64,000 bases of DNA from Selaginella moellendorffii (GCF_000143415.4 NW_003314433.1:109375-173374); one strand, 5' to 3'; positions 421-48,870 are shown, numbered from the stretch's first letter. The notes: generated from the letters alone by a model not told the origin. Numbers and translations are program-made.

Positions 421-423
<3 letters not shown>

Positions 424-5044: not shown

Positions 5045-5744
5045 GAGGCACAGCCAACGGTAGGCGAAAAAATAAGCAGGGACGAGTCATCGTCCAGGTA
5101 ACCAAATATATTCCAGGTTTGCTGAGATTGATATATGGTGAAGAAAAACGAGACAAATGCGCACTCAGTGATGGAGCCCGTAGTGCGACGATCCATGGTC
5201 GAGGTCGACTTACAACGCGTTGATAAGTTCTACACTTAATGGAATGGCATGTGGATCCAAACGCACACGCGTGATCGACATTTGCGACAAGACGAGGGTA
5301 TGTTTACGCATTTATACTCATTCATTCATGGTGTAGAACAGGGTGACATCAGGATCAAAAGCGAGAATAAGATACACTCAGGTCGGAACGACAGGGATCA
5401 AACTCATCAGTAGCAACGGAGAGGTTTGTATTCTGGATTTAAATCGCGTCTCTCAGCAAGCTTTCGATGAACAGCAAATGGAAGGAGAAAAAACCCGGCG
5501 GGTTGGGGTCCACGTCGTCAACAAAACGATGCGGATCAATGTTAAAAACCCACAGACTGGTACGTGCAATGCTTTACAGCCAGAAGTTTTGGCTTTCTTA
5601 GCGAAGAATCGTGCAGAATCTGGCAAGGAAAAGGAAAAGTATAATCGGGCCACTAACAAGGTGGAGCATCGCGAATGGAAGATAAGCTAAAATGCATTTA
5701 TTTTCGTTCTCTTTCTTTCTCCGTGGTATGGGGGACTTCTCTCA

Positions 5745-5883
5745 GCATATCCCGAGCTGCATATCCAGTGATTCAAAGCAAAGTTCTCACCCTTATACCC
5801 CTCTTTGATGATAGTCGGGCAATTATCACACCACTATTCTTCCATGTCTTGTGTGTCTCTAGTCGGCCAACCAGAGTATAAAA
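5745..5883 (+). promoter_or_regulatory. Tandem P1BS motifs (GCATATCC at 5745-5752 and 5759-5766) and a TATA box (5877-5883) upstream of the PHO1-like gene
   Basis: GNATATNC consensus lies upstream of a PHO1-family fragment. PHO1;H1 is a known PHR1/P1BS target. The second spacer copy keeps one site (44520-44527). Confidence 0.55.
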
Positions 5884-6751
5884 TGCGACCACCACCTTCA
5901 TTGCAAACTCCCCCTGCTCCCTCTTCCTCTCGCAGAAGGAGAGAAGGCTCCAAGTTTTTGAGTGAGCAAAGGGCTCTCACCTCGAGAACTCGACAAGCTC
6001 CCTCGATTCCAAGCTTGGCTCCTTCGGTTATTCTTCTCCTCTTCGTCCCCTTGCAAGAGTAAGTTTTTTCTTTGCTTTCGTAGTTCTGAGCTTGCGATTC
6101 TTTCAGTTTGGTTGCGCCAGCAATCGGGATTCCGACGAAACAAAACGCTCCATAAGCGTGATTTCCAGAAAGAGTACGTGCATCGCTTCCTTCCATGCTT
6201 TAGATGCTCAAATGATTCTTTCATTCCCTTTCGCTCGCATAAATTACTCGTGTTGACAAGAAAAGAGTTGAAGTGTGTGAGAGTGTGTGTAAGTGTGTAA
6301 CTTACGACAGCTTCTTTTCATGTAGATTCCCCTGCATTCCCTGTCCTTTTGTTTCCTTTTTTAGTTCCATAGGCCAATGGATCGCTTGCTTCTTCGCTCC
6401 TCTTGCACTCTGCTGCGTCAGTTTCTCTCAGGAAAACGTATTCTTATGTAATTGTTCGCTGGCGTCGGTGAGAAACGAAGGCTTTCCCCCTTTTTTCCAG
6501 AGATGATCTTAAGGCGCTGTTTTCTTGTGAGAATTGGTGCTCCTCCCCAGCACAATGCATTTGATGATTCCACGCCACCATTTGTCTCGTCATATGCTCA
6601 TTGCCACTGTTCTTTTTCTGCTTCCAGAGCACAGGCGCCAGAAAAGTTTGAAGAGGCATTCTGAACTTGACACCATTTCCTCCAGGTATTTCATCTCTTG
6701 CTTGATCGTTTTCTTGACGATGTTCGCCTCAGGTAATCCAAGCTTTCAGAC

Positions 6752-7410
6752 ATGGTGAAGTTCCAGAAGCAGCTGGAGGGCCAGCTCGTCCCAGAGTGGC
6801 GGGTGAAGTACTGCGACTACAAGCAGCTCAAGAAAGTTGTCAAGAGAATCAAAAACCAGATCCTACACAGCAGCACAAGGTGTTCGATCCAAATGTCTTC
6901 TCGGATGACAAGAGCAAGCTTCAAAACTTGCTGCAAAATCCCAGCGCCATCCTGAGCAGCTGCTGCGAACAATCCATATCCTCGGAAACGTCCATGGATG
7001 TTCTGGACTGTAAAGACGAAACAAAACTCTTCAATACGATGAGGTTGTGCACAAGACGAGAATTGCAGATGGCGAGGATTTTTAAGAGAAGGAGCTGTTT
7101 GGAACTCGATCGGATCACGAAAAGAACTTCTTTTTCGGCCTTGACGATCAGCTCAACAAAGTGGACAAGTTTTTTAGATGCAAGGAAGACGAGTACGATG
7201 CTCAAGCACAGCAACTTCACATCCAAATGGAAGAGCTCATCGTTATGCAAGGTTTGTTATAGCAGCCTCTAAATCTGTAGCACTTAACTTGGAATCGTTT
7301 GACGTCTACCATGTTGTAGATGACGAATGTCAGAGCTTGAATAACAAAGGAAAGGTTCAGCGAGCATCCAAGATGCTCCAGACGGCCTTTGTCGATGCAA
7401 TCCCTCCAGG
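6752..7410 (+). pseudogene. PHO1: PHO1-family SPX-domain 5' fragment (spacer copy 1)
   Basis: Motifs [28 protein letters not shown] and FFGLDDQLNKVDKF. Frameshifted; the EXS domain is missing. Confidence 0.85.
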
Positions 7411-7704
7411 TAGTAAAGTTTATGGACCGCGCAGAGAGAGTGTTCACTCTGCACTTTACGAAAGGCAACCGAAAGCAAGCCAGGCCCATACACTCTGCGA
7501 GCAATCATGGAAATATAAACTTTATCCATTTCATGCATTCGGATCGTCGTTATTAATTAACCTTCTATCACCATTGATGATAGGACGCAGAGATTGTATA
7601 CTAGTAGTTTCATGGCAATGGCATTGCCTCTAGAAAAGGAAAGCACTGACCATACCTTTGGGAATAACTGTAATCTATTCATTTAATTTTCAGCTAGAAC
7701 TTTC

Positions 7705-7857
7705 ACGGACCTTATCGTTTCTTCTTGCTGCGCTCTTTGGAAGGTTTGGTAGCCTCCTCTTCGGCGTTGTGGTCGGCTTCAAGTCTCGCGAGCTGCAAAT
7801 CAAACAATGCTGTTGTGAGGATTCCTTCTTGAGACACCACTTTACCTTGTCAAGGAC
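7705..7857 (-). pseudogene. Last exon(s) of the kelch/DUF4110 (KLHDC4-like) gene, cut off at the palindrome junction
   Basis: The minus strand reads VLDK|GT..AG intron|LARLEADHNAEEEATK. In the 46857 arm the same sequence continues the kelch gene's RELKP. Confidence 0.6.
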
Positions 7858-8180
7858 CGCCGGGTTTTTTCTCCTTCCATTTGCTGTTCATCGAAAGCTT
7901 GCTGAGAGACGCGATTTAAATCCACAATACAAACCTCTCCGTTGCTACTGATGAGTTTGATCCCTGTCGTTCCAACCTGAGTGTGCCTGATTCTCGCTTT
8001 TGATCCTGATGTCACCTTGTTCTACAGCAACCACCATGAATGGATGAGTATAAATGTGTAAACATACCCTCGTTTTCCTTCACCATATATCAATCTCAGT
8101 AAACCTGGAATATATTTGTATGCCACTGCACACACAGCAGCATCCACTAAATTAGATTCCAGAGCTGATAACTTTTACAT

Positions 8181-8313
8181 GGTCACCTGGACGATGACAA
8201 GGACCAAAGGTCTTCCCACATAACCATCAAGCCACGTTTCGTGGATTTCGTAATACACTCGCATAAGGTATGCCATCCTGTAAGAGAAGCAAAGCTGAAT
8301 AACTCCACCAAAA
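8181..8313 (-). pseudogene. SPP: 3' fragment of SPP in the right arm, fused to the truncated EIN3 copy
   Basis: Reverse complement of ~4920-5100 (YASVLR..ETWLDGY). Confidence 0.7.
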
Positions 8314-9345
8314 CAAGCACTTGGACTGCCTCACGAGCTTCTGCTGCTGCTGCTGCCCGATCAAATTCCCCGAGCACTGCCTCGCCAGCGCCTCCTCCTG
8401 GTTGAGCACCGAGATCCACGTCGCGCTCTCCTTGGCAGTCATCTTGTCTTGCAAGCACTTGGACTGCCTCACGAGCTTCCTGATCTTCCCGATATCCGGG
8501 GACATGTGTCGGATCACCGCAGTGACAACTCCAACCTTCCACACCTTCTTGAGATCATGGGGCTTCTTATACGGCGGCGGCCCCTGCCCATTTGGAAGCC
8601 CAAGCTCGGGCCACCACTCCTCGTCGCCGCTCGGCCACCACGGCGGCGCCACCCCTTTCTCCAGCGGGTACCTCCGCTGGGGTGGATCGCAGTGCTGCAT
8701 TAGCGCCGAGAGAAGCGATCCGAGGGTGGTGTCCTGGAGCTCCTGGAGAGTGTGTGGCGTCGGGGCGGCGGCGGAGAGCTGGCCAGCGCCGCCGCCGGAT
8801 CTGGAGCAGATGCCCTCGTACTTGGCCATGGCGGCGGGGCCGTTCCGATCGAAGCGGACCTTCTCCTTCCATCACGCGGTTGTTGTTGCTGGCGCCGCTC
8901 ACTGGCTTGCCCTTCTCGGGGATGATGCCATAGACGAATCCTTGGGCTTTGCAGACCTCCATGAGGATCGCGTCCTGGGCTCACGACATCTTCTTCCGCC
9001 GGGCTTGCTCCTGGGATTGCTTGTGCTTGACGAGATTGCCCAGATTCTGGTGCTGCGCTGCTGGGCCGCCGTGATGCTGCTGCTGCTGCTGCTGGCCATG
9101 GCTGCTGTGATTCGAGTGATTCGAGGAGAATGCGTTGTTGACCCTGGACTTTTGCTTGTCCTTGATCCGCTTGAGCCGCAGCCGATCGTTCCAAATCCTC
9201 TCTCCAGCTCGTCCACGTCCATGTCGTCGTCGCTGAAATCCTCGTGATCCTGGACGACCGCCTCGCCCAGGCCTCCATCGTTGTCTCCCACAAGATCCAC
9301 GTCCAGGCCATAGCAGAGATCCGGGTCGCCGCCGTGGAGCTCCAT
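8314..9345 (-). pseudogene. EIN3: EIN3/EIL second copy with several frameshifts, 3'-truncated
   Basis: EIN3 motifs are split across ORFs 8899..9345, 8981..9424, 8567..8962 and 8227..8829 ([23 protein letters not shown]). Its lesions differ from those of copy 1. Confidence 0.92.
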
Positions 9346-11042
9346 CTTGCGGATCGATCGGAGTGGAAATATTTCGAGCGCGCGCTGCCGAGAGGAGGGA
9401 ATATTTCGGAGCGATTACCTCCAATTCGCCATGGATCGAATGGGAAAGCGAGGAAGATCACGGGAAGCAGAGAGAAAGAAGGAAAAAGCTCGATTCAACG
9501 CGAGCCCCTTGTTGATTACCTAGCTCCATCGATGCCCCGTCGACGCGCGCTGCGCTCGCCGATGGCGCCCGTGACACAGTGGCGCAGCGCCTTCAAATTC
9601 GACGGGCAAGCGTCACAATCCCAATGCCGCCACCGCTGCGAGGCGCTGCCCAACGAGAATCGATGCCCTAGCGCATCAAGATCCCCGCTTTGCTGCGAGA
9701 GAGAGAGAGAAGAGCAAAGGCGCAGCGCTCCTCGCCATAGCCAACTACTAGCTAATAGCTATCCATCCAAATGCTGTACAATTCCCCCCACTGCCTTTTT
9801 TACACGTGGCACAGCTACATCTGGTGGATGCCCTTTTCAGCCCTTCCGGCTTACGGCCAATTTGGCTATCTGCCTCAAATTTAGCTAAGCGGTTTGTTGC
9901 CAGATTTAGCAGCTCCCCGAAGCTGCCAGTTTGTCGGAATCCAGTTTGGGTCATAAAATGGACCACTGGGGGACCCCGGGCTCGAACCCGGATCAGTGGA
10001 TGCCGCTCGAGCCACGGACCGGCGGTCTCGTCGCCGGACTCGAACCCGCCACCGTACGCTCTACGCCTCCACCGCTACCATACGCCTCTCTCTAGTTTAT
10101 TATACGCCTCCAATCCTTGGTAGTGCTTCCTCATGATCACCTCTACGTGACAACCAACCCGGCGTAGAGTACGTGGGGTACGACGTTTGAAACTCCATTC
10201 ATTGGGCTTTGTTAAAGAGAATAAAAGAGAGAACGCCACTGTAGCTAAACCTAGAAATCAAAAACTAAACTACATCGTGCCATTATTGGTTTGACTCTAT
10301 GGCTTAGATGCAACACCTTTTACTCGGGCGGTGCCCTAATCCTCGCGAATAATAAAATATTCGCTGCCGGAGAATATTCCGGAATCGGCCCGTGGTGAGG
10401 TTTTGGGCCCCCCCCCAAAATGCTTATTTATATTGTTCGCTGGGAGTCCATGTTCCCTTTTTAGCTCCCCATGTGTGGCCTTTGTTTTTGTTGCCAGCCA
10501 AAGAAACACACAGAAAGTTTGAAGGAGAGAGAGAGAGCACAAAAATCTGAGAGGAGAGAAAGAAATGGCACTGGCTTTGATTGACTTTGCCGCGCTCCAC
10601 TTCTTTGATCCCTCCATCTCCATCTCGTCCTTTTTCTTTTTCTACTTGGACTCGGACGATTCGATCCATGTCATGTTTCGCTCGAAGTCGATGGATCACT
10701 GCCCGATCACTCCACCACTTCTTGTCGACTGGAAAAGTCTTTAAATTCCTCTCGCTGATGCGATCAGCACAGCATTAGCCTGAGATCAAGGCCGCGGATC
10801 ATCCAGCAAAGTCTAAGCTTTTTGCCACGGATGTGACAAGCTAACGTGTTGTCCAGAGCGCTTACAGGTTCCATTGTTTTTTCCATGACAATTCTTTTTC
10901 CTCCGGCGACCGGCACGAAAATCGTCCGAAGCAACCCAAACTGGAAACAAGATACATGCCCAGTTTCTCGGACAGATTTCCTCAAGCCCGGCAGCACACG
11001 GAAGACGAAGAAATTCGTTAAAAAATCCACGAGCAAGCAGCA

Positions 11043-11073
<31 letters not shown>

Positions 11074-13883
11074 AAGAACTTTGCCAAGCCCAAAGTCGTT
11101 GATGTTAAGCTAGGCCGTGCTTGAAGCGCGTGATGATGATCATGAAAGTTCCTGTCGAGATGCTCGGTGGATTCTCCGTGTCTCCAGCTAGAGACTTATC
11201 GATCAATCCACAGTGTGCGGCAGCCGTCGTTTTGCTCGATCGCTCCCTCGTTTGCAAAAGCTCGGACTTGACGATCCTTCTCTTTCTGCCATGGATTCCT
11301 CCATGAAGAGACCACCGAGCCAAGTTGCGAGAGTGAGGTTAAGCTGTAGTGATCTTACGGACATCCTCTTTTTGGATTGCTTCCTTTTTTACTCCTTGTA
11401 TCGTATCGACACTGTTGTAGAAGAAACAAACGAGTTTTGGAGGTAGCAACTTCCCTTCCATATGATTGATACATGAAGAACAAGACATCGCTTGCAAGTG
11501 GAAGATCACACGGGAGATGTTTGGAGTCAAACTGGAACTTTCGTGATTGTTACGAGCACCTCCCCTGAATCCAGCACCACACTATCTATCTGGTAATGTT
11601 TCAAAACGAGTAAACTAATCAGTGTTTGTTGGGAATGAATGTTTGTGCTGCTTGGCCACTTGCACTGCGGCAGCAGAGGAGGATGTTTTGCGGCAACTAT
11701 ACCCGACTAAATCGAAGTACTTTAATTGCAATTTGCAAGATCACAAGTACTAGTCCTGAAGAAAAACAGCGAGATGTGCTTATAATCAAGGCATTGTTGC
11801 AACGCAAGTGGAAATTCACTATGTTTAGCTGGGCTTTCTGGGGATGCTTCATCTGAATCACATAGTGTCACCTTGCCGTATGAAAAAGACAAGAGAAAAA
11901 TTCTTACTCACTAGAGTTTGGCAATTTTACTTTAGCTGCTACAATTTTTCCATTGTTGATACTCATTGTAGCTTCATTCAACTCCACACTTTTTTACTTG
12001 ATTAGAGATGTAAAGTTTTGTGTCAAGTTCTAAAATTTTGTCTATAGTTACAAAACCACAAGGTTATCCATAAATGGATTGATATTACTATAAACAATTA
12101 AAGAAAACAATTTGAAAGTCGATCAATAGGGTTCAAATATAAAAGGAAATGGCTCATGAATAAAAATACATTTTATTTTCCAAATGCACTTATTTTTCCA
12201 ATCGGTTAAAGGTTTTGGGATATTTGGGGTTAAGTGTCTCTAGGTTGGGTGACTTCCCGGGAATTTCAAATTCAAGAGTTTATAATTACTTCAATGTAAA
12301 GGTATAATTTCAACTTCTCTTTCTTCCTTTCAGCTTCTTTTTTTTGCTTTTCAATATGTAGTGAGTGAAATGCTTTCACTCGTAAGTTTTTTATAGGTGA
12401 GTGAATAAAATTTGTATAACTTACTTTTCCAAAGTTACATTTAAGATGGCCAAGTGAGCAGTGTGATGTGCTCTTACAACCAAGTGAATAGTTTCTTAAC
12501 TTGTGCTAATTAGAGTTTGCTCACAGATATAATACAAAATAAATGGGGATGCAATAAATTTATTCATTTCTCTCCTCGAGATAAATCATTCGTTTACTTC
12601 TTGTTAAATATATAATTTTTGATTGTGATGTTTTTCACTTTTCTTGAAGGGTGCAACATATACTCCCTTATCCAAAGATGCAGTTGTTGATTCCATGTTA
12701 TAGGTAAAAATTTGATAATTAGGATTGTTGCAAGTTTCAATATTAATTTTGGGACTAACTTCTAAAGTTTTACTGAGATTATTTTAAATTAATAAGTTCA
12801 AAACTTTTTTTGACAATCATAAGAAGTCAACACTTCAAGTTGGAAATATCACTAAGGTTAACCTTAACCATATAATATCCAATCTTATTACAACCAAATG
12901 TGGTTTAGATTATTCAATAGCAATCCAAACATTTAACCATATTCATCACTTGGAGATGCAATAATAATTATCAATAGTTTGCTTTAGATATTGCTTTCCA
13001 AGGAATTGTTCTCATAAAAAACAATGGCTTACTACTTTTATTCACAATCTTGAAAATTGTGGCTCTTATAGGAAACAATGTAAATACAATATACAGGCAT
13101 GAACTTGCAAAAAAGCATGATAGATTATAAACAACCAAAGATAATAACTTAAAAAATTATTAATATTGTTTCAAATATAGAATTTTACCCTTTGTTCCAA
13201 TTAGTTATAAGTCTTGAGTTATTTGAGATTAAGCATCTTTAAATAGTCTGATTATAGTGCCATAAATAATATAAGTTAATGTTTGTAAAGAACCTAGCAA
13301 AAAAGAAAACAATTTAAAATTAAACAACCTTTTAAAAATGAAATATTTACTAGAATGTTCAAAATAAGTATTTAGAAAGCATTTTCATTAGAGCTACTCT
13401 CAAGTAACACTTGATATGTTGTAAATGATTTCATAGTAAAAAATATTTTTATACTTCATTTTTAAAATAATTATAAGTGGTGTTTATTACATATTTTGTA
13501 GTTTGTAAAAGATGTCTACAGACACTCAAAAACCTTTTGCTGTTAAATTATTTTCATTCGAGCACTTGCTTATAATAGTTAAAGCATAATACAGTGTTTA
13601 GTTTTATGGGATGGCATATATATGTAATTGAAAAGAGTAAACAAATTTCTATATGGAGTTTAGTAAGTAAATAGAATTGTGAACAATGACAATTTTGATA
13701 AGTCTTTAAAGTGTAGTTTATAACATAGTTTAGCTAAACATTAATTTAAAAAATAAGTTGAAGTTAGTAAAGATAATATAAAGTTATCTCCTATAGTATG
13801 TGATGATAAATAACAATTAAGTACTTGTATTTAGTTTTGAAATGCATTACCTCAAAAGGTTTATTAATGTTAAATAACTTCAT

Positions 13884-14101
13884 TTGAGACACATAATCCC
13901 TAGGCCTAAAGTGGAGCAAAAAGGGTGCCATGTGGTAGTGGCCGAAGTGAAAGCCAAACGAGCGTAACACGTTTGGACTAAAAGGCTCCGACTTGAAATG
14001 TTAAGAGCGGGAGTGGAACTCCCAACGGAGTGCTCAAGGAACGAGCATGAAGCGAGCAATAAGCAAGGCTCCAAAAAGGGACCCAAAAAGGACTAACACA
14101 T
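13884..14101 (+). mobile_element. Truncated, diverged 5' ~220 bp of the long-LTR family found at 30202
   Basis: Matches 30203-30420 (gagacac..aagggtgccatgtggtagtggccgaag..gaccaacacat). It replaces ~54360-54650 of the paralogous flank. Confidence 0.8.
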
Positions 14102-15056
14102 AGTCTTTGTTAAATAAAACTAAAATCATAGATATATCTCAATGTAAAATACCTTTGTAAATCCATATTGTTTTATAATCCAAGGTTATAGGATGGATAT
14201 TAAAATATTTAGCCATGATTGTCTTTTAGTCAATTTCTTTCACAATTTTAGTTTTCATATCGAAATGTCATTAATATGAAATCATTTGATTAGTTTTTCC
14301 TTCACTTGGATTATTAAAAATTCAATACTGAAATAAACTTGAAACATTAGAATAAACATGAAATAATATTTTAGAGCAATAATGCAAACTTACCTCATTG
14401 ACTTCTATTACAAAATATAGCCTAATCATTCCAAAGACATATAACAATAACTATATAAAGCATATTTATTTACCTTCATCTTGCCAAATCACCTTGTAAA
14501 AATATAGATTGATGATCTGCTTTAGAATGGTGTTTGTTAAATAAAACTAAAAATTTAAATGTTAAATACCTTTGCAGACCTATATTTTTCTTTCTTCTAG
14601 GATTATGAGATGAAGAGCAAAACATATAATTAATGATTTACTTTAAATGCCCTACATAGCGTTTGTTAGATAAAACTAAAAGCATGGATATATTTCAATA
14701 TAAAATACCTTTGTAAATATATATTGTTTTATCATCCAAAGTATGGGATAAAAAATAAATTATTTGGTAGTTTTTCCTTCATTTAAAGCATTAAAAATTC
14801 AACACTGAAATGAACTTAAAACATTAGAATAAACAGGAAAGAATAATTTGGAGTTATAATGCAAACTTACCTCATTAACTTCTGCTATAAAATATACCCC
14901 AATCATACCAAAGACATATAATAATAACTATATAAAGCATATTTATTTACCTTAGTTTTACCAAACCACCTCATAAAAATTTAAATTGATGATCTATTTT
15001 AAAATGGTGTTTGTTAGATAAAACTAAAAACTTAAATATTAAATACCTTTGCAGAC

Positions 15057-18000: not shown

Positions 18001-18930
18001 TGGACTAGTGAGTGCCTTGAAGAGTGCTTCACCTGCCTCCTCTGGAAATGATGCCGTCAGTTCTACTAGCTTATTGCAAATGCCATTCTGAAATGCCTGT
18101 TCCCACCCTTCCTTGCCAATGTCCTTATCTAGGATGGCTAACTCTTCCACCTTGCACTCCTGACTTGCCAGATCCCTACTCAATTTCCCAAATCCTTCCA
18201 CTGTCATCCTGTTCGAAGCCAAGGCGAGACGTTTCAAGTTGTTTCCTGGTTTCCTAAGGAGTTGGCTAAGGAGAGTCTCTGGGTTCCCAACCTTGTCCAA
18301 CCCGAGCTCTGTCAAGCAGTCGAGCTGAGCAAAGGCCAACTCAAGCTCCTGAGGTGGTGTGAGGATGTCTTTGCCTTCCCAATAGATACCTAGCCCTTTC
18401 AAGACTTTGAATTCCTCTGTCATCATCAGTAGCTTTGCAAACCTCTGCACCTCAATCTGGCCAATATCTTGTCCCTGCTGAGGAGGAGCAATGCCCTCTG
18501 CCACCCTTTGCATCCGATCACTGGGAATGCCCAACCTACAAGCGACCCTGGCAGCGAAGTGGATGAATCTGATGTCGAGCTGTGGTACCAAAGCGGCCTT
18601 GAGAATGTCAATGTGAGCAGCAGCAGCAGCAGCAGACGAACTGCCATCACCAGGAGCATCTCCCACATCCAGAGCCCTGTCTAAACTGGGTGGATTTGAA
18701 ATGCACCAGTTGAGCACACCAACCAGATCCTCCTCTGTGCCTCCAAAACTCTCGACGGTAGCACTCACCTTATCAACAAACTCGCCTTCGGATAGCTCCA
18801 GCCTCGAGAAAAGCCCACAAGAAAAGCCAATCGCATTGAAGTGCCGCTTGTTGTCCCGCTTCGCTGCGAGAGCCTCCTTGATCTCCTTGACAGAGCCACA
18901 GCTGATCCACACTCGTCGCTCCTCCTCCAT
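15057..18930 (-). pseudogene. LRR-Roc-COR (TORNADO1-like ROCO) copy 1
   Basis: Ribonuclease-inhibitor (RI)-type LRRs, P-loop GASGVGKTT, DLAGQEEF and COR. A ~0.4 kb frameshifting deletion lies at ~16080 and a TAG at 15438-15440. Confidence 0.9.
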
Positions 18931-25346: not shown

Positions 25347-25351
25347 TTACC

Positions 25352-36295: not shown

Positions 36296-36890
36296 GGAGT
36301 CTGAGATGGAGTCCGAGATGGACCCGAGGTGGAGTCCGAGATGGACCCGAGATGGAGTCTGAGGTGGACCCGAGATGGACCCGAGATGGAGTCCGAGATG
36401 GAGTCCGAGATGGACCCGAGGTGGAGTCCGAGATGGACCCGAGATGGAGTCCGAGATGGACCTGAGGTGGAGTCCGAGATGGACCCGAGATGGAGTCCGA
36501 GATGGACCCGAGATGGACCCGAGATGGAGTCCAAGATGGAGTCCGAGATGGACCCGAGGTGGAGTCCGAGATGGACCCGAGATGGAGTCCAAGGTGGACC
36601 CGAGATGGACCCGAGATGGAGTCCGAGATGGAGTCCGAGATGGACCCGAGGTGGAGTCCGAGATGGACCCGAGATGGAGTCCGAGATGGACCCGAGATGG
36701 AGTCCGAGATGGACCCGAGATGGAGTCCGAAGTCGAGACCGAGACCGGGACCGAGACCGAGACCGAGATCGGGACCGAGACCGAGACCAAGGCCAAGGCC
36801 GAGACCGAGCCCGAGCCCGAGCCCGAGTCCGAGTCCGAATCCGAGTCCGAGTCCGAGTCCGAGTCCGAGTCCGAGTCCGAGTCCGAGCCT
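36296..36890 (+). repeat. Tandem array in the 3' LTR (same units, different copy number)
   Basis: Read directly from the sequence. Confidence 0.95.
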
Positions 36891-39800
36891 GAGAGGGTGA
36901 AAGCCCAAAGCGTTCGTCTCCCAGACCCTGGGGGGTTTGGTGAGCTCCAAAAGTATAGTAGGGGGAGGACTGCAGTGGAGCCAGTTTGGCCCAGGAAGGC
37001 CGGACCTAGTGTTGGGTGATGAGCTGCCCACTGGGAAGTCCAAGACTAGAGTGAACACGGACCGACAAGCGGGGTAGCTTGGTGAAGTGTTCAAGAGCCG
37101 GCTCTAGTTCCCCCGGGAGATCGACTGGCCGATGCTCCTAGTCCAAGTGTGGGTGGCACTACCTACTTGGATACCTGGTGTGGCTCAACGGAACCCGCTC
37201 TAAGCCCATGGCTAGAGCACCCAAGGGCAGAAGGCGAGGAGAGTACCCAGGTGGCTTGCGTAAGGCCACGGTGTTTCGAAATGTTGTCCCAAAGGCCCAG
37301 ACTGTGGAAAGGAAGAGGAGCAGTCCTCTGGGGTAGTGACCAAGGACACAGTCGTGTGGTGAGGAAGTCCCAGAGGACCGTGGGACTTAGTGGTCGGGCC
37401 TGTGGGTCTCGATCCAGTGGCAGTGTTGGCAAACACGGCCAGGGGCAGAAAGGGACTTAGTGGGGACTGACAGAGGGATATTGGGGAAGGCTATTCCCCT
37501 TGTCGGTGGGCATCCTAAGGATGCTAAGGAGTGGATCTCAGATGACCACTCACGGATGGTTTGCCTAGTCTTGGAGAGCCAAGACTGTGATGCAAGTGGT
37601 AATGGACTACCAGCGTGGCAAAGGTGATTGGGCATGGCCTTAGCGTAACAGACTGCCATGTCGGTGGTACCTTTGAGTGTCGGTCATGGGATCGGACACG
37701 GGGAGCACTTGGACCAAGTGCAAATGTTGAGTGGCATGGATGCCATTCTCAGGGCTAGCAAGTCCCAAGTCCTGGATTGGACTTATGGAGGTTGTGAATG
37801 AGACTCCTCCAAGTGGTCGGAGGTGTGGTTAAGTGACTAAAGTAGAATGGAAAATTTAGTCCCTTACACTTAAATATCTCTTGCACATCTTCCGCTTTGG
37901 GATTTGTAATTAGCTTGCTTTTGAGAAGACATGAATCCAAAAAGCTTATGAGCTTTCCCTTGGTTTCATCCACCATTGCATTCACTATCTCTCTAGCACC
38001 AGCAAAATGTCCTCCAACTTTGGCCCCAATAAATAATAGGATCAATGTATATTTAAGTACTGGAGCAAATTTATTGAGCCAATTTGGTGGGATATTCAAT
38101 TCAACACCTTCAGAACTCTTCACTTGATGACCTTTAGAAGTTCCTTGAGGCCATTCACACAAATAGTGAAGTCTACCATGTGTTCCCAATATTTTACTGT
38201 AATTTTTCCACCTATTATTCTCATCAAGAATATATGGATATTTTGGGCAATCTGTCTCCAATTTCAATAATACTTGAAAACACGTTGTATGGATTGCATT
38301 CACTTTATCCATGATAGACTTGAGTCCATTCTTCAGCTCGTTAAGGCTTACTTCAATGTTATCAAGTTTTGTATCCAATTTGTCAAACCGGTTCTCCATT
38401 TTATCAAACTTCTTATCAAAATATCTAAAGATTGCATCGAGTTTTGGGTCTTCAATGTTCGAAAACTCAACAACATCTGATGATGCTTTGGGAATTGTGA
38501 CTTCTCTAACCTCCTCATAGTCCTTCAAAAATTCATAAAGTTCAATAAACTTCTTTACCCCTTCATGTTTTTGCTCGTTAGGCATCAATAGCTTAGCCAA
38601 AGCATTCCATCTGAGACTTTCAAATCGTTAATCACATCCCAACTCTCTACTTCATGTGAATCATTCCAAGTATGAGAGTAGTCTAAACCGCTTTCTCTTG
38701 CTTCACATTTGACTTGCTTTAATGGATAAATAACTGCATCCCATGATTTTGGTTTGCCCACATTATTTAGTATCCTTCTCCACACATAACCACGTCTCAT
38801 TACATTTTCTTCAATTTCCAAACATGGGCAATCCTCCAAACATACCCCAATAATGCAATTTCTAATTTTTTCCATCCATCCTTTAGCTTCCTTTTCCAAA
38901 TCTGGCCTTAGTGTATTCTCTACCTCTTTTGGGTAATAGATGATGACATCAACCCATTGCCTATCTTTCCAATTGTCTGTGTCTCCCCCAACTCTCACAA
39001 TTGTCTTGATAAGGTTTTCTTTCAAAGCCACCCATCCATTCCCAAGCCTGAAATCTTTCTTGCTTAATTTGTGAAGTTTAACTTGGATCTTTGTGAAAAT
39101 ACTTGCAGGAAACAATTTCAAGTCCTTGTCTTTGCATTCAAACCTCCTGCCCCAGTAGTTGTGGTTTTTTTGAGTGTCAATTGGCACTGAGGGTGACAAT
39201 AAATATTCTGGAGGTGAATATTCTTCTTGCAATAGTGTTGGCATTCTCAACTCTTTGGGCAAGTTATGCCAATTCCCATCCCATGTATCATCCCAAGGCA
39301 ATATCACTCCCATCTCATGGAGCACTCCAAGAATGTACTCCACTATTTTGTCTTGGTTCCCACATTGTTGCTTCAACTGATGTTTAACTCTGTGTGTTTC
39401 CATTTGACTTTTGAGTTTGCTTGTCTCAGTATGTATGAAGAGTTGCACCACATCCCTCATAAACCATTGGACATCTAAGATGACAAATTGAGACACAATG
39501 TCGTCCTCTTCATGTCCCAAGCCAAAGTAAATTGCATCACCAGAATCATGTAGAAATTGCAAGACGAATTTGAGAACATCCTTGGAACTCCTGTGAGGCA
39601 AAAGGATTTTGCCAACTTTATCTAGGGGTATGACCTTCTTGTGAGTTGGATCTTGTACCAATTTCCTCTTTGCTTTGAGACATTCCCGTGGTATTTTTTG
39701 CTGGGCTGACAGCAGTTCTTCCAAGCAACTCCCCAACATGGTTTTTATCCCCCTTAAATCTTTCACTTGAGTGGCCACCACCTCAAAACAAAGATCTGTC

Positions 39801-42129
39801 CCAAACTCAAGTACTTGCTCATAGCCTTTGTCGGAGATTATTGCAGAAACCACCTCCTTTGGGTCAAAGTCGGGTTCTGGAGTGAAAAAGTTCGAGGCAA
39901 TCAAGACCCTGGGCTTCCTTTTGGGTGAGGCTGATTGATGTGAAGCGATGAACCTCAGCCAGTAAACCAAATTCTGCTTGAAAACGTCACAATTGTCATC
40001 CTCCACCTTGCATACGATCAAGAAGAGATCGTTCTCACTTCCTCTGAGAAAGTACTGGTGGAAAGCATGGAACTCTTCCTGTCCAGCCAGGTCGCAAATG
40101 AGCAGCTTTTGTTTGGTGGTCGCATAGACAAGTGGTTGCAGCTCAATGCCTGCTGTTGAAGCATGCCTTTGGAGACATGATGGAAACCAAGACACTCTGC
40201 GGCAGAGGTTTTTTTTTATTGTGGTCTTTCCAACCCTGCTAGCACCACACAAGAAGAGCTTTGCTGTTGACGGGTTGTCAAAGTCTTTGAATGCACTCTG
40301 CTGGAAGATTGCATTCCGCTCTAAAAGACCAGAACACCTCTGCTTGAAAGCTTCAGAAGCTTCGGAATCCCAGCCTAGATCAAGCTCTTCCACGAGGCTT
40401 TGGTAGTTTTCCTCCAGGGCAGCCAGAATTTGTCTTTTCTGTGCATCACTTGTAAGATCAGGAGCCCTGAATCTGCGCACCTTGCATTTTGGATCCCCCA
40501 GCAACTGGCAAAGCTCTTCCAGGTTTTCAAATTTTCGCTCAGATATTTTCAAGTCTTCAATGCTGCTTCCCAAAAGGCACCTCCATGGCAGTTCCGACTC
40601 ACACAACAAAGCTTTCAGAGACTTGCAGCTGGAGATAGCTTTCCAAAAGAGCTCCCCATTCGTGATTTTGCAACTCCATATACCCAAATGCTCCAGTTGG
40701 CTCTTCTCTATGCCCTCGGCAAACTCCAACGTTAACTCATCTTGTCCACCACTTATTACCAAATGGCGCAGCTTACAATGTGGACTTGAGAGGGCTGACC
40801 ACAGACTGCTGTCACCGACCATTCCTCCTCCCTCGTTGGGCGAAAAAAGATGAAGCTTGATCAGCTTGCAATTGGGATTTTGTAGCGCTTTGCCCAACCA
40901 TCCACCACCTGGATAAAGAGTAACGCTGAGTTCCTCCAAGCCACACTTAGCGCTGCTCAGGGCCTCACCCAGGCCCGTTGCATTGCTCAGGTCCTCACTC
41001 TGTCTCATTTCTTGGCAATCTAAAACTGACAGGCTGGTGCCCTCCTGAAGAGCCTTGCATACCCATGGCAACACTGCAGGATCAGTTTCCCAAAGTAGGT
41101 TTAGTCTTTGCAGTGAACAGCTTGGACAAGTGAGTGCCTTGAAGAGTGCTTCACCTGCCTCCTCTGGAAACGAATATGCCTGCAGTGCCACTAGCTTATT
41201 GCAAATGCCATTCTGAAATGCCTGTTCCCACCGTGCCTTGCCTAAACCCTCATCTCTGATGGCTAACTCTTCCACCTTGCACTCCTGACTTGCCAGATCC
41301 CTACTCAATTTCCCAAATCCTTCCACTGTCATCCTGTTCCCCAGCAATTGGAGACGTTTCAAGTTGTTTCCTGGTTTCCTAAGGAGTTGGCTAAGGAGAG
41401 TCTCTGGGTTCCCAACATTGCGCAAGCAGAGCTCTGTCAAGCAGTCGAGCTGAGCAAAGGCCAACTCAAGCTCCTGAGGTGGTGTGAGGATGTCTTTGCC
41501 TAGCCAATTGAATTCTAGCCCTTTCAAGACCTTGAATTCCTCTGTCATCGTCAGTAGCTTTGCAAACCTCTGCATCTCAATCTGCCAAATATCCTGTCCC
41601 TGCTGAGGAGGAGCAATGCCCTCTGCCACCCTTTGCATTCGATCACTGGGAATGCCCAACCTACAAGCGACCCTGGCAACGGCGTTGATGAATCTGATGT
41701 CGAGCTGTGGTACCAAAGCGGCCTTGAGAATGTCAATGTGAGCAGCAGCAGCAGCAGACGAACTGCCATCACCAGGAGCATCTCCCACATCCAGAGCCCT
41801 GTCTAACCAGGGTGGATTTGAAATGCACCAGTTGAGCACACCAATCAGATCCTCCTCTGTGCCTCCAAACCACTCGACGGTAGCACTCACCTCATCAACA
41901 AACTCACCTTTGGATGCGTCAAGCGCCTCCAGCTTCCCGATGTGCCCACAATAAAACCCAATCGTATTGAAGTGCCGCTTGTTGTCCCGCTTCGCTGCGA
42001 GAGCCTCCTTGATCTCCTTGACAGAGATACAGTAGGTCCACACTCGTCGCTCCTCCTCCATGGAAGTTTGCCCTGGATCGAAGGGACAGTGGAGAGCACG
42101 AGTAAACTTGTAAAAGTGAACCTTGCCAG

Positions 42130-42260
42130 CAGTGGAAGCAAAGCAGTAAAGAAAGTATGCCAGCTGTGCAAGAAAAGCAAAGCATATGCCAGCTGTGCAA
42201 GAAAAGCAAAGCATATGCCAGCTGTGGAAGCAAAGCCATCGTATGGAAGCAAAGCGGACA
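42130..42260 (-). repeat. ~29-bp tandem repeats (GCATATGCCAGCTGTG core) in the ROCO copy 2 leader; mirrored at ~48915-49030
   Basis: Read directly. GCATATGC occurs at 42182, 42211, 48939 and 48963. Confidence 0.8.
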
Positions 42261-42297
42261 GTACAAGCAAGAGTTAATTTAGGTTTTAGGGTTCTTC

Positions 42298-44286
42298 GAG
42301 CAAGACGGCCGAGAAGCGAGCTCATCGCGACGAGAAGAAGGTGTGGGACGAGGATGATATTGATGCGATCTTGGTAAGCAAAGCACTGGCCAAAGACTCT
42401 CAATCGTTTTCCTTCTTGTCAGGCTAAACTCCACGAGGAGAGAGCAAAGAAGAGCGAAATTCATGTCGATGAGAATGTAGCAGCTCCTTCACCACAATGC
42501 AATTGCTCTGTGCGTAAGAACTCGATTGAAATCTCCACTCTGGAAGCTCACATTCTCTAGAATTCTTCTTTTCTTGCGTTTCAGGTGACTGTAAATCCCG
42601 TCAAGGACACTGCGCTGATCGTCCATGGAGGTGAATACCAACAATGGTGACAAGGTTTGTGGTTAGTTTCGCTACGGTGATTTGATCTTCGTGTTTGCTA
42701 TGCTAGACTTACGTTTATGGTGATCTCTACCAATACAACATCGAGAAGAACGAGTGGAAGCCTGTCACCAGTCCAAACTCTCCTCCCCGAGAAGCGCTCA
42801 CCAGGGGGTTGCGTGGAAAAACTGGCGCTTCAGTTTTGGTATGATGTATTTTTCAGGACTTCTCTTGATTTTGGCAGTGTAGGTGGTGAATTCGGTTTCA
42901 TCACTATAAGGTGACTTACAAGAGAGTTCTTGCAGGATTTATGGAGACTGGATTTAAACACAAACGTGTGGCGGGAGCAGCTTCAACTAAAAGGCTGTCC
43001 AGGTGCTCGTTCCGGACATAGATTGGTATGTATTGCGCTTCTAAACATAATCTTTATTTTTTTCTTTCTTGCCACAGAAACATAAACTTATTCTATTTGG
43101 TGGATTTTATGACACGCTGAGGGAAGAAAGGTCGGCCGTTTCAGCAGTGTAGATGTTTAGTATTGAATTTTTGACACAGGTACTTCAATAATCTTTAAGT
43201 GCTGGATTTAGACGATTATAAGGTTTGTTTCTGTCGCTCATCGCTCTTCCTTGTTTTTTAACAACTAAACTGATTTCCTTTTGCAGGTGATTCCCTGCAC
43301 AGCGTTTTTATGATCGAGATGTATATGCTTTCCAGATGGTTTGTATCTCGTCGATTTTTTTAAAATTATCTAAACACCATCGCTCGCAGGTATCCTTTGG
43401 AGCTTCTCAAGCCAAAGAGCCTAAAGATTAAGGTATGGCAATCTGAGATTGTGTAGTGGTTAAGTGTGCATCCAAAGCAGAAGAAAGTGGCTGATCCAAA
43501 TGTGGAAAATGCGTCTCAACGTTGAGCGTTCTGCTTGAAGGTTGTTGCCTGGTGGAAGAATGAATGCTGGAATGGTCGTTGGAAAGGATACTTTGTTTCT
43601 GTATGGAGGTATGAAAGAAGTCGGCAAAAAAAAAGTGACACGACGACCTTTCCTCGCTGGACCTTCGATGTGTGGAAGTGCATTATTGAGGTTAGTATGA
43701 TCGAGCCATCATCCAGCCTCATACTAATGTCTCAAGCAGGAAACACAAAGCGCGTGGATTGAAGCTAGTAAGGAGAAAGGCGAAACTGATGGTGACAACA
43801 GTCACCATGCTGGATCGATTAATAAAGGAAAAGACGAAGAGGACGATGACGAGGTAGTAAAAAAGAAGGATGTAAGAAAACTTGTCGGTTTCCTTTTGTA
43901 TTCTAGGATGCAGTGGAGTCACTGTGAAGAGGCAGCTGCTATTCTTAGGGGCGAAGGCAAAAAGCTGACACAGAAAGCACGGAAATTAAAGATCGATCCG
44001 AGCTGGGCCTGGCTGATTCCCAACAAACACTTTTGGTGAGTGCTGATAGTAGTTCATCTTCCTGTTTTGTTATTGATTTGTCTTTCAGCCTGGAGAAACG
44101 CTGAGGGATTTTTTATCTTGGACGATCATGTGTTGGCAAATGGCACCTTACGATCACACCCAACACACTGGAAAGGTGACAACGCAGGTTTTCTTTCGCT
44201 CGTTCTTCATGCTCTATGCATCTATCAGGAGCTCAGGAAGGATGGATTTGACTTGGCAAAGAGACGCTACAGAGAACTTAAACCCG
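42298..44286 (+). pseudogene. Kelch-domain/DUF4110 gene (KLHDC4-like), degraded and truncated at the spacer
   Basis: Exons read DEDDIDAIL, VYGDLYQYNIEKNEW, GCPGARSGHR, HKLILFGGFYDTLRE and WQMAPYDHTQHTGK|ELRKDGFDLAKRRYRELKP. Confidence 0.85.
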
Positions 44287-45506
44287 GTTGGGGTCCACGT
44301 CGTCAACAAAACGATGCGGATCAATGTTAAAAACCCACAGACTGGTACGTGCAATGCTTTACAGCCAGAAGTTTTGGCTTTCTTAGCGAAAAATCGTGCA
44401 GAATCTGGCAAGGAAAAGGAAAAGTATAATCGGGCCACTAACATTGCGAATGGAAGATAAGCTAAAATGCATTTATTTTCGTTCTCTTTCTTTCTGCGTG
44501 GTATGGCGGACTTCTCTCAGCATATCCCGAGCTCCATATCCAGTGATTCAAAGCAAAGTTCTCACCCTTATACCCCTCTTTGATGATAGTCGGGCAATTA
44601 TCACACCACTATTCTTCCATGTCTTGTGTGTCTCTAGTCGGCCAACCAGAGTATAAAATGCGCCCACCACCTTCATTGCAAACTCCCCCCGCTCCCTCTT
44701 CCTCTCGCAGAAGGAGAGAAGGCTCCAAGTTTTTGAGTGAGCAAAGGGCTCTCACCTCGAGAACTCGACAAGCTCTCTCGATTCCAAGCTTGGCTCCTTC
44801 GGTTATTCTTCTCCTCTTTGTCCCCTTGCAAGAGTAAGTTTTTTCTTTGCTTTCGTAGTTCTGAGCTTGCGATTCTTTCAGTTTGGTTGCGCCAGCAATC
44901 GGGACTCTGACGAAACAAAACGCTCCATAAGCGTGATTTCCAGAAAGAGTACGTGCCTCGCTTCCTTCCATGCTTTAGATGCTCAAATGATTCTTTCATT
45001 CCCTTTCGCTCCATAAATTCCCTTTCTCGTGTTGACAAGAAAAGAGTTGAAGTGTGTGAGAGTGTGTGTAAGTGTGTAACTTACGACAGCTTCTTTTCAT
45101 GTAGATTCCCCTGCATTCCCTGTCCTTTTGCTTCCTTTTTTAGTTCCATAGGCCAATGGATCGCTTGCTTCTTCTCTCCTCCTGCGCTCTGCTGCGTCAG
45201 TTTCACTCGGGAAAACGTATTCTTATGTAATTGTTCGCTGGCCTCGGTGAGAAACGAAGGCTTTCCCCCTTTTTTCCAGAGATGATCTTAAGGCGCTGTT
45301 TTCTTGTGAGAATTGGTGATGATTCCACGCCACCATTTGTCTCGTCATATGCTCACTGCCACTGTTCTTCCTCTGCTTCCAGAGCACAGGCGCCAGAAAA
45401 GTTTGAAGAGGCATTCTGAACTTGACACCATTTCCTCCAGGTATTTCATCTCTTGCTTGATCGTTTTCTTGACGATGTTCGCCTCAGGTAATCCAAGCTT
45501 TCAGAC

Positions 45507-46416
45507 ATGGTGAAGTTCCAGAAGCAGCTGGAGGGCCAGCTCGTCCCAGAGTGGCGGGTGAAGTACTGCGACTACAAGCAGCTCAAGAAAGTTGTCAAGA
45601 GAATCAAAACCCAGATCCTACATACCAAGAACCAGCAGCACAAGGTGTTCGATCCAAATGTCTTCTCGGTTGACAAGAGCAAGCTTGAAAACTTGCTGCA
45701 AAATCCCAGCGCCATCCTGAGCAGCTGCTGCGAACAATCCATATCCTCGGAAACGTCCATGGTCTGTGATGATGGTCTAAAACACTTCAATATGATCAGG
45801 TTGTGCACAAGACGAGAATTGGAGATGGCGAGGATTTTTACGAGACAGAGCTGTTTGGAACTCGATCGGATCACGAAAAGAGCTTCTTTTTCGGCCTTGA
45901 CGATCAGCTCAACAAAGTGGACAAGTTTTTTAGATGCAAGGAAGACGAGTACGATGCTCAAGCACGGCAACTTCACATCCAAATGGAAGAGCTCATCCCT
46001 ATGCAAGGTTCGTTCTAGCAGCCTCTAATTCTGTGGCACTTAACTTGGAATCGTTTGATCTCTGCCATGTTGTAGATGACGAATCTCAGAGCTTGAAGGG
46101 GAGCCCGGCAACAAAGGAAAGGTTCAGCGAGCAGCCAAGATGCTCCAGACGGCCTTTGTCGAATTTTATCGTGGGCTTCGACTCCTAAGAAACTTCAGGT
46201 GAATGACCTCTATACGATTGATCCATGTTCTCAAAGTGTTGACAACTTACTTGGCAGCTCCTTGAACATGATGGCATTCGTCAAGATCCGCAAGAAATAT
46301 GAAAAGGTACTTATGGAAAATGGAAAATTAGTGCAGACTTCTAAAAAGGTTTTTTAAATTTTCAGGTGACTGGAGTCTGGCAGTCGAAAACTCTCACTTT
46401 GCAACGTCGGACAAGG
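45507..46416 (+). pseudogene. PHO1: PHO1-family SPX 5' fragment (spacer copy 2)
   Basis: Motifs [31 protein letters not shown]|SSLNMMAFVKIRKKY and ENSHFATSDK. No EXS domain. Confidence 0.87.
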
Positions 46417-46709
46417 TGTGAAGAAATTTTCCTTTTGAGGGTCTTGCTGATGGAATTTCATTGCTCCAATGCACTCCAAGCGAGCAATCATGGAAATATA
46501 AACTTTATCCTGGGTAAGAGCAGGATATCCATTTCATGCATTCGGACCGTCGTTATTAATTAACCTTCTATCACCATTGATGATGCGACGCAGAGATTGT
46601 ATACTAGTGGTTTCATGGCAATGGCATTGCCTCTAGAAAAGGAAAGCAGTCACCATACCTTTGGGAATAACTGTAATCTATTCATTTAATTTTCAGCTAG
46701 AACTTTCAG

Positions 46710-48870
46710 AGATCACGGACCTTATCGTTTCTTCTTGCTGCGCTTTTGGTAGCCTCCTCTTCGGCGTTGTGGTCGGCTTCAAGTCTCGTGAGCTGCAAAT
46801 CAAACAATGCTGTAGTGAGGATTCCTTCTTGAGACACCACTTTACCTTGTCAAGGACGGGTTTAAGTTCTCTGTAGCGTGTCTTTGCCAAGTCAAATCCA
46901 TCCTTCCTGAGCTCCTGATAGATGCATAGAGCATGAAGAACGAGCGAAAGAAAACCTGCGTTGTCACCTTTCCAGTGTGTTGGGTGTGATCGTAAGGTGC
47001 CATTTGCCAATACATGATCGTCCAAGAGAAAAAATCTCTCAGCGTTTCTCCAGGCTGAAAGACAAATCAATAACAAAACAGGAAGATGAACTACTATCAG
47101 CACTCACCAAAAGTGTTTGTTGGGAATCAGCCATGCCCAGCTCGGATCGACCTTTAATTTCCGTGCTTTCTGTGTCAGTTTTTTGCCTTCGCCCCTAAGA
47201 ATAGCAGCTGCCTCTTCACAGTGACTCCACTGCATCCTAGAATACAAAAGGAAACCGACAAGTTTTCTTACATCCTTCTTTTTTACTACCTCGTCATCGT
47301 CCTCTTCGTCTTTTCCTTTATTAATCGATCCAGCATGGTGACTGTTGTCACCATCAGTTTCGCCTTTCTCCTTACTAGCTTCAATCCACGCGCTTTGTGT
47401 TTCCTGCTTGAGACATTAGTATGAGGCTGGATGATGGCTCGATCATACTAACCTCAATAATGCACTTCCACACATCGAAGGTCCAGCGAGGAAAGGTCGT
47501 CGTGTCACTTTTTTTTCGCCGACTTCTTTCATACCTCCATACAGAAACAAAGTATCCTTTCCAACGACCATTCCAGCATTCATTCTTCCACCAGGCAACA
47601 ACCTTCAAGCAGAACGCTCAACGTTGAGACGCATTTTCCACATTTGGATCAGCCACTTTCTTCTGCTTTGGATGCACACTTAACCACTACACAATCTCAG
47701 ATTGCCATACCTTAATCTTTAGGCTCTTTGGCTTGAGAAGCTCCAAAGGATACCTGCGAGCGATGGTGTTTAGATAATTTTAAAAAAATCGACGAGATAC
47801 AAACCATCTGGAAAGCATATACATCTCGATCATAAAAACGCTGTGCAGGGAATCACCTGCAAAAGGAAATCAGTTTAGTTGTTAAAAAACAAGGAAGAGC
47901 GATGAGCGACAGAAACAAACCTTATAATCGTCTAAATCCAGCACTTAAAGATTATTGAAGTACCTGTGTCAAAAATTCAATACTAAACATCTACACTGCT
48001 GAAACGGCCGACCTTTCTTCCCTCAGCGTGTCATAAAATCCACCAAATAGAATAAGTTTATGTTTCTGTGGCAAGAAAGAAAAAAATAAAGATTATGTTT
48101 AGAAGCGCAATACATACCAATCTATGTCCGGAACGAGCACCTGGACAGCCTTTTAGTTTGAAGCTGCTCCAGCCACACATATTTGTGTTTAAATCCAGTC
48201 TCCATAAATCCTGCAAGAACTCTCTTGTAAGTCAGCTAGAAACACAGCTTATAGTGATGAAACCGAATTCACCACCTACACTGCCAAAATCAAGAGAAGT
48301 CCTGGAAAAATACATCATACCAAAACTGAAGAGCCAGTTTTTCCACGCAACCCCCTGGTGAGCGCTTCTCGGGGAGGAGGGTTTGGACTGGTGACAGGCT
48401 TCCACTCGTTCTTCTCGATGTTGTATTGGTAGAGATCACCATAAACGTAAGTCTAGCATAGCAAACACGAAGATCAAATCACCGTAGCGAAACTAACCAC
48501 AAACCTTGTCACCATTGTTGGTATTCACCTCCATAGACGATCAGCGCAGTGTCCTTGACGGGATTTACAGTCACCTGAAACGCAAGGAAAGAAGAATTCT
48601 AGAGAATGTGAGCTTCCAGAGTGGAGATTTCAATCGAGTTCTTACGCACAGAGCAATTGCATTGTGGTGAAGGAGCTGCTACATTCTCATCGACATGAAT
48701 TTCGCTCTTCTTTGCTTTCTCCTCGTGGAGTTTAGCCTGACAAGAAGGAAAACGATTGAGAGTCTTTGGCCAGAGCTTTGCTTACCAAGATCGCATCAAT
48801 ATCATCCTCGTCCCACACCTTCTTCTCGTCGCGATGAGCTCGCTTCTCCGCCGCCTTGGCCGTCTTGCTC
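46710..48870 (-). pseudogene. Kelch-domain/DUF4110 gene, mirror copy retaining its native 3' exon
   Basis: Reverse complement of 42298-44286, continuing RELKPVLDK|intron|LTRLEADHNAEEEATK into the spacer. Confidence 0.82.

Follow-up and report, generated by a model that had tools for sequence, protein, structure and literature searches.

Balanced inversions in tandem gene clusters and segmental-duplication arrays form by two breaks followed by end joining. They have two breakpoints, reciprocal joints and a reversed interior, with head-to-head and tail-to-tail paralogues at their ends, and these features are shared by the locus described here, which is part of a ROCO gene array of the lycophyte Selaginella moellendorffii. 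The window, i.e. the whole stretch of 64,000 nucleotides that was analysed (GCF_000143415.4 NW_003314433.1:109375-173374, with positions counted from its first letter), contains two giant palindromes, A-S-A' and B'-S-B, which have the spacer S in common and are probably the two ends of one balanced inversion. Compared with other balanced inversions in tandem arrays, both joints are base-perfect here, with an overlap of at most 1 nt, and the breaks lie 2.4-2.6 kb apart in phase. We know of no textbook example that is described as two palindromes sharing a spacer, a point on which no systematic search was made. Inversion breakpoints have been surveyed (10.1101/2021.12.20.472354 and PMC2988034), and our literature searches yielded nothing specific on a Selaginella ROCO array or on such palindrome geometry.

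Three other systems are comparable in part. Ac/Ds-type alternative transposition also has its breakpoints at both ends of one directly repeated segment; unlike in that system, S has no terminal inverted repeats, target-site duplication or transposase, and its ends are located inside exons. In the staggered-break inversions of Drosophila, duplicated pieces are created by the event itself and are located at opposite ends of the inversion. These inversions are flanked by inverted repeats, as ours is, but in our locus the event has not duplicated anything, and both members of an inverted pair are found at the same end. A related paper is PMC7584159. The palindromes of mammalian sex chromosomes, for example those of the primate X chromosome (PMC8327919), are similar in having kilobase-long inverted arms, a unique spacer and gene copies in the arms. 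They also show signs of arm homogenisation near the centre, represented in our locus by a common deletion and a perfect stretch of 639 bp, and, as in those palindromes, non-allelic homologous recombination (NAHR) between the arms could flip the spacer. Unlike in those palindromes, the arms in our locus are 88-96% identical distally, are not sisters and would have been juxtaposed by the inversion, and most of their genes are fragments or pseudogenes.

Overall organisation of the palindromes

An earlier note on this DNA had described two giant palindromes with a common spacer that has the same boundaries in both, and analysis of the window with a repeat finder and self-BLAST bears this out. In palindrome 1, the inverted arms are formed by positions 1-5501 (A) and 11461-7857 (A'). 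Their identity is 90-93% by BLAST and 90-99.6% when calculated by substitutions, and A' lacks about 1.9 kb that is present in A (3097-4922, in the sucrose-phosphatase, or SPP, region). Arm A' extends to about position 13100, while the start of the window cuts A short. In palindrome 2, the arms are formed by positions 37869-44286 (B') and 53303-46857 (B); they are 94% identical overall and about 99% identical in the inner 2.2 kb. The two spacers, S1 (5501-7857) and S2 (44286-46857), are in the same orientation, i.e. they are direct copies, and are 97-99% identical by substitutions, except for an indel-rich patch (7001-7500).

Direct reading of the sequence gives four joints: A/S at 5501 (..AAAAAACCCGGCG-G-GTTGGGG..), S/A' at 7857 (..GTCAAGGA-C-CGCCGGGTTTTTT..), B'/S at 44286 (..CTTAAACCC-G-GTTGGGG..) and S/B at 46857 (..GTCAAGGA-C-GGGTTTAAG..). 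The strings in the earlier note match these letter for letter. Its further claim, that the swap takes place exactly at a common G and that no base is gained or lost, is upheld when the joints are aligned: S/A' and B'/S, the novel joints, are exact reciprocal swaps of the native joints A/S and S/B, with a one-base G/C ambiguity, zero filler, zero deletion and zero net gain or loss. The inverted 7-mer AAACCCG/CGGGTTT, which had been noticed beside both breakpoints, does adjoin both and flanks S in every native unit. An inverted 7-mer match at 12 nt or less is found for 0.25% of random position pairs in the window (p ~0.0025). In A', an extra GCG is kept and four extra bases separate the 7-mer from the break, i.e. 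the 7-mer is offset by 4 nt from one of the breaks.

The reference array and the native joints

The public assembly of S. moellendorffii was used as reference, in the form of eight loci of its ROCO genes (L001 to L008). On GL377608.1, between 1.52 and 1.62 Mb, it contains a tandem array of units of about 22 kb, each with the order EIN3, (SPP), SPX, kelch (minus strand), ROCO (plus strand) and spacer, in which the SPX part is a 5' fragment of PHO1 and kelch is a kelch/DUF4110 gene on the opposite strand. Further copies of the unit are located on GL377709.1 and GL377737.1. The intact EIN3-SPP-PHO1-kelch source block that the earlier note proposed to look for elsewhere is thus present in several copies. 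L004, L008, L001 and L006 could be stitched together with perfect overlaps into 103 kb (GL377608.1:1516557-1619360). Within these 103 kb, self-matches of at least 800 bp are direct in 88 cases and inverted in none, so the ground state of the array is purely direct.

A single-copy locus consisting of Myb, ROCO, SPP-like and full-length PHO1 (SPX plus EXS) is represented by L003 (GL377608.1:1457888-1482245) and L007 (GL377709.1:75829-100189). The ROCO and PHO1-5' parts of the unit look as if they descend from it. In both L003 and L007, contiguity extends over most of S and over the part of A next to S. The homology of S to PHO1 stops at window position 46478, and L003 9114-9257, upstream of the ancestral ROCO gene, matches window positions 46566-46716, which suggests that the original tandem-duplication joint may be located at about 46478-46566. 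In the public annotation of L001, L004, L005 and L006, the EIN3, S6PP and SPX domains are merged into single gene models; the array units would carry chimeric genes built from fragments, with putative expression and function.

Pattern searches and queries of 300 bp to either side of each joint showed an uninterrupted A/S in L005 and also in L003 and L007, the ancestral PHO1 loci. S/B is contiguous in six loci (L001, L002, L004, L005, L006 and L008), including a unit with a full-length kelch gene of 623 amino acids. S/A' and B'/S are found in none of the eight reference loci, and homology to each of them ends exactly at the joint. Pfam scans covered the ten longest open reading frames (ORFs) of the window and ten short ORFs around S and its joints. 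In these scans, the DUF4110 match continues for 12 residues past S/B into S (30.5 bits), while at B'/S it ends at the joint (20.1 bits). Contiguity in the reference and the DUF4110 matches agree that A/S and S/B are native and that S/A' and B'/S are novel, as the earlier note had supposed. It had also remarked that the kelch reading frame runs through S/B, and this frame (..RYRELKP/VLDKVKWCLKKESS..) is indeed kept in six units, among them the one with the full-length kelch gene.

A probable balanced inversion in the tandem array

We interpret the paired palindromes, with good confidence, as the two ends of one balanced 36,428-bp inversion in a tandem array of ROCO units. The findings are those expected of a balanced inversion: reciprocal novel joints, an interior that is reversed with respect to a forward exterior, and zero net change of sequence. 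In a census of orientation, bases homologous to the reference outside positions 7858-44285 are 100% forward (5455 in A, 2354 in S1, 2570 in S2 and 11443 in B and beyond). Inside this interval, the sequence that does not belong to transposons is reversed: all 5096 of the 5096 reference-homologous bases of A' and the adjoining spacer, 5487 bases of the block containing the third ROCO copy (ROCO3), 1599 bases of a third S copy (S3) and 6417 bases of B'. The exceptions inside the interval are the transposons and 212 bases of small repeat. Positions 7858-18954 of the window are colinear with reversed L005 23018-9981, through EIN3, spacer and ROCO. When the interval 7858-44285 is flipped back, three head-to-tail units result, namely A1-S1-kelch-ROCO2, a reduced S3-ROCO3 and A3-S2-kelch-ROCO1.

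The locus would have started as three consecutive units of about 22 kb, arranged head to tail. One break would have occurred within the last kelch exon of unit 1, at the S/B position, and the other within the last exon of the chimeric EIN3-SPP gene of unit 3, at the A/S position. The piece between them would then have been rejoined in reverse; it measures 36,428 bp today, including retrotransposons that would have been inserted later. The rejoining without loss or gain of bases and with at most 1 nt of overlap leads us to infer two clean double-strand breaks followed by end joining, which may have made use of compatible 1-nt overhangs. The breaks are at different phases of the repeat, 2.4-2.6 kb apart, and the palindromes therefore take the forms A-S-A' and B'-S-B. 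In general terms, an inversion with break phases p2 < p1 produces two palindromes, each with p2..p1 as spacer in its original orientation and with the native joints outermost.

Several points weigh against this interpretation. The joints are known from assembly sequence alone. No exactly allelic, un-inverted counterpart of the three units was identified, and the pre-inversion state given above is a reconstruction. Matches of the window to different reference units range from 92 to 99.4% and form a mosaic: by stretch, the best matches are 99.4% to L001, 99.4% to L002, 99.1% to L005 and 99.2% to reference 31554-34948, with no single counterpart. The inverted 7-mer and a breakpoint shared with L008 (at 24246, see below) suggest that the break sites were perhaps not random, and a plain two-break model has no explanation for either of them. 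The perfect joints at both ends are also somewhat cleaner than is typical of end joining.

As a structural change, the inversion is of an ordinary kind, but it can be seen unusually clearly in this locus. It provides a clean, base-resolved case in which one inversion in a tandem array leads to paired palindromes with a common spacer, a pattern that could be misread as fold-back amplification or as a special invertible element. For genome scans, a rule would be to regard two palindromes with a common spacer and reciprocal joints first as the ends of an inversion in a repeat array. The locus also documents structural variation, ROCO pseudogenisation and arm homogenisation in an expanded lycophyte ROCO (TORNADO1-like) cluster of gene fragments. 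The sole hint at something beyond the ordinary is a recurrent breakpoint at S/B.

History of the arms

The arms are older paralogous units that were brought face to face and are not sisters, because the ROCO genes of the two arms of palindrome 2 have different affinities. In trees and identity tables, ROCO2 (in B') groups with L005 at 96.7%, and ROCO1 (in B) and ROCO2 are about 93% identical. Over its 5' 1.9 kb, ROCO1 (49100-53300) matches L001 at 99.4% identity, and over its 3' 2.3 kb it matches L002, which is located on another scaffold, likewise at 99.4%. This mosaic suggests that units or haplotypes have recombined or undergone conversion, or that one of the two assemblies is chimeric here. 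The distal parts of the arms are 88-96% identical, and S2 is 99.1% identical to the S segment of L005.

The inner arms of palindrome 2 have been homogenised, as judged from three features that they have in common. Both arms lack a segment of about 436 bp (near 47866 in B and near 43277 in B'), a deletion that is seen in none of five reference units, one substitution is likewise shared by both arms and found in none of the five, and the longest perfect stretch between the arms, of 639 bp (47518-48156, with its partner at about 43625-42987), spans this deletion. Sharing of derived changes is not seen in the distal arms of palindrome 2 or in palindrome 1. The similarity of the inner arms would be explained most simply by gene conversion, and the homogenisation of the inner 2.2 kb could have taken place before or after the inversion. 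The identity of about 99% between the inner arms was also considered as proof of palindrome-specific conversion and was rejected as such, since all reference units are 98.6-99.2% alike there.

Alternative explanations

If contigs were flipped or mis-joined during assembly, or haplotypes fused, within the repeat array, the palindromes would not be real. Tandem arrays are hard to assemble, and a window in which near-allelic reference matches (99.2-99.4%) are mixed with paralogous ones would be in line with such an error. However, mis-joins fall within shared repeats, not at two non-homologous positions where new sequence is made, and there is no reason why they should produce base-exact reciprocal joints. 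The arms, which differ by 1-12% and by kilobase indels, are not fold-back chimeras at the level of reads. We consider an assembly artefact quite unlikely.

The two breakpoints could also be specific sites that are cut recurrently, be it by a nuclease, by a transposase acting on cryptic ends or at a replication-pause site, in which case S would be a rearranging cassette. At position 24246 of L008 (GL377608.1, reversed; region 24180-24290), B begins at the same nucleotide as at the novel joint of the window (the equivalent of 46857), with a different partner: A-distal sequence, followed by a filler of 34 nt in which 7 nt come after 27 nt of EIN3 coding sequence. The rearrangement is independent of that in the window and shares its breakpoint to the base, which the origin of the filler does not explain. 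A deletion in L001 that ends 12 nt from A/S and the presence of the inverted 7-mer at both sites also speak for recurrent cutting. Against it, exact recurrence is not found at A/S, and the agreement at S/B is a single coincidence with a chance of about 0.4%, calculated post hoc among about 15 junctions inspected in 22-kb units.

S itself was considered as a transposon and rejected: its ends (GTTGGGGTCC.. and ..CTTGTCAAGGA) are not inverted repeats and there is no target-site duplication. Both ends lie inside ordinary exons, and the ancestral PHO1 gene (L003, L007) and the full-length kelch gene (L008) run without interruption from these ends into the flanks, which also speaks against sites of specific cutting. 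The Pfam-scanned ORFs contain no recombinase or DNA-transposase domain, and the only integrases among them belong to copia elements. A programmed switch would have a recombinase gene nearby and inverted sites at its boundaries; the only boundary motif here is the offset 7-mer, and no such gene is among the scanned ORFs. The invertible architecture around the ROCO genes that the earlier note inferred is thus no more than a possibility, and no flip isomer and no unusual hairpin turned up. Taken together, we regard a specific cutting activity with S as its cassette as very unlikely. The more general proposal, that the S/B position (..CAAGGA^CGGGTTT..) and perhaps A/S are sites in the Selaginella ROCO array at which breaks recur, directed by sequence, is unlikely. 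If a specific nuclease, a cryptic transposase target or a replication barrier were at work there, S would be a cassette with repeatedly reshuffled flanks, and the kelch and EIN3-SPP copies with an intact 3' end would change from one rearrangement to the next.

The earlier note had held an inversion responsible for the palindromes, and this part stands; the inversion it had in mind was one of S itself, followed by recombination within S, and this part is not supported as it was put. By that route, S alone would be flipped in one A-S-B unit, after which homologous recombination with a forward S elsewhere would invert the interval. The same two novel joint sequences would result, and S copies that are 97-99% identical could recombine. 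The product, however, would be A-S-A' ... B'-S'-B, with a novel joint outside, whereas S2 is forward in the window and the native joints are outermost. An arm-to-arm flip would be needed as a third event, and S is inverted in place in none of the eight reference loci. The single inversion is preferred because it takes one event instead of three, and the route through S is highly improbable.

Two independent fold-back or inverted-duplication events at S, by hairpin-capped breaks or template switching at AAACCCG/CGGGTTT, are extremely unlikely: the inverted 7-mer does bracket S in every native unit, and palindromes with short unique spacers are the classic product of fold-back, but such events make sister arms (in their ROCO parts, B and B' are nearer to different reference units than to one another), the colinear, inverted array extends from A' through spacer and ROCO3, the joints lie outside the 7-mer, with the extra GCG kept in A', breakpoint hairpins are unexceptional (z -0.5 to +0.3), and base-exact reciprocal joints would not result from two independent events.

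Three other causes for the breaks were rejected. NAHR between inverted repeats is contradicted by breakpoints in non-homologous sequence with at most 1 nt of overlap, and a crossover within the 7-mer AAACCCG/CGGGTTT by the bases between the 7-mer and the break that A' has kept. A hairpin or cruciform is not visible as a cause, with folds of 61 nt at the four joints giving z values of -0.48 to +0.30 with respect to shuffled sequences.

Genes and retrotransposons in the window

The Pfam scans yielded EIN3, S6PP, SPX, DUF4110, a weak Kelch_4, Roc/COR-A and copia gag-pol matches, plus a few sub-threshold matches at chance level. Arm A (positions 1-5500, plus strand) is the outer, un-inverted part of unit 1 and is colinear in forward orientation with L005, L001 and L006. 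It contains an EIN3 fragment as an ORF (2208-3074, Pfam EIN3_DNA-bd, E=1e-108) and sucrose-phosphatase fragments from position 3518 (Pfam S6PP, E=8e-13). The gene model of the EIN3-SPP chimera has its terminal exon at 5343-5690, spanning the A/S joint. S1 (5501-7857, plus strand), with its native joint on the left and its novel joint on the right, contains the 3' end of this model and the PHO1-derived promoter and SPX exons (Pfam SPX, E=1.5e-14); a kelch/DUF4110 gene on the minus strand also has its 3' end there. The SPX start codon is located at 6752 in S1 and at 45507 in S2. Arm A' (7858-13100, minus strand) is the inverted A of unit 3 together with inter-unit spacer. The joint cuts its EIN3-SPP copy 63 codons short of the stop, leaving an ORF (8015-7842) that ends four codons into S1. 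The ROCO3 block follows (13250-18997, minus strand; Pfam Roc/COR-A), colinear with reversed L005 16072-9981. ROCO3 is a pseudogene, with a deletion of 425 bp at position 16080 with respect to every other copy in the indel list.

Nested copia retrotransposons occupy positions 18998-28302 (plus strand), with Pfam placing the nested elements at 19318-28183. The outer element has long terminal repeats (LTRs) of 149 bp and the target-site duplication TTCAC; it is located at a pre-existing deletion by which the middle unit had lost its kelch gene. For the inner element (20602-25346, minus strand), the target-site duplication is TTACC, and its polyprotein ORF of 1355 amino acids (20870-24937) is apparently intact. 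Beyond them lies S3 (28303-30028, minus strand), a partial, inverted third copy of S and a remnant of the middle unit, 97.6% identical to L001 5481-7036, of which the kelch part and the A part have been deleted. A further LTR retrotransposon (30202-37868, plus strand) has been inserted into the 3' end of ROCO2, displacing this end to 30024-30201. It is 7.7 kb long, with TG..CA ends, the target-site duplication CTTAA, a tRNA-Met-like primer-binding site (TGGTATCGGAGC) and LTRs of 1.8 kb, each of which contains about 18-20 copies of a 23-bp tandem repeat. Its interior of 4 kb contains no ORF of at least 120 amino acids and has a strong G and A skew; a relative with 75% identity is present at L002 570-2093. 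The target-site duplications of all three retrotransposons are clean and their LTRs are 98-99% identical. They are simple insertions outside the inversion mechanism and, we infer, later than it.

Arm B' (37869-44285, minus strand) is the inverted B of unit 1. It contains ROCO2, with its ATG at 42061, which is a pseudogene by a 1-nt frameshift and by the LTR-element insertion, and a kelch copy that is truncated in the last exon at the joint and gains a foreign tail of 14 codons; the copy in B has its native end. S2 (44286-46857, plus strand) has its novel joint on the left and its native joint on the right. Arm B and the sequence beyond it (46858-57185, plus strand) form the outer, un-inverted part of unit 3, with the kelch/DUF4110 gene on the minus strand, the terminal exon of which extends into S2, ROCO1 and inter-unit spacer. 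ROCO1 (49089-53417) is intact, with 1443 codons, and its predicted protein is 91% identical to S. moellendorffii proteins named TORNADO 1 or ROCO. Both ROCO copies in the inverted piece are pseudogenes, with an intact outer ROCO1. Exact-protein look-ups of ROCO1 and of the copia polyprotein returned none on record.

The earlier note did not contain the third S copy, the third ROCO block, a partial fourth ROCO copy or the three LTR retrotransposons. The fourth ROCO copy, of 1 kb and limited to the 5' part, is located at 57253-58282, after the spacer downstream of ROCO1, and L002 has the same layout. In the sequence beyond it (58300-64000), two long ORFs on the minus strand (59369-60601 and 61217-62707) have no Pfam match and no homology to the reference loci that were fetched. 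The inter-unit spacers (12000-16000 and 54000-56000) are AT-rich, with 26-30% G+C as compared to 45-57% in the genic parts, and have a direct repeat of about 345 bp inside them (14279-14622 and 14757-15099).

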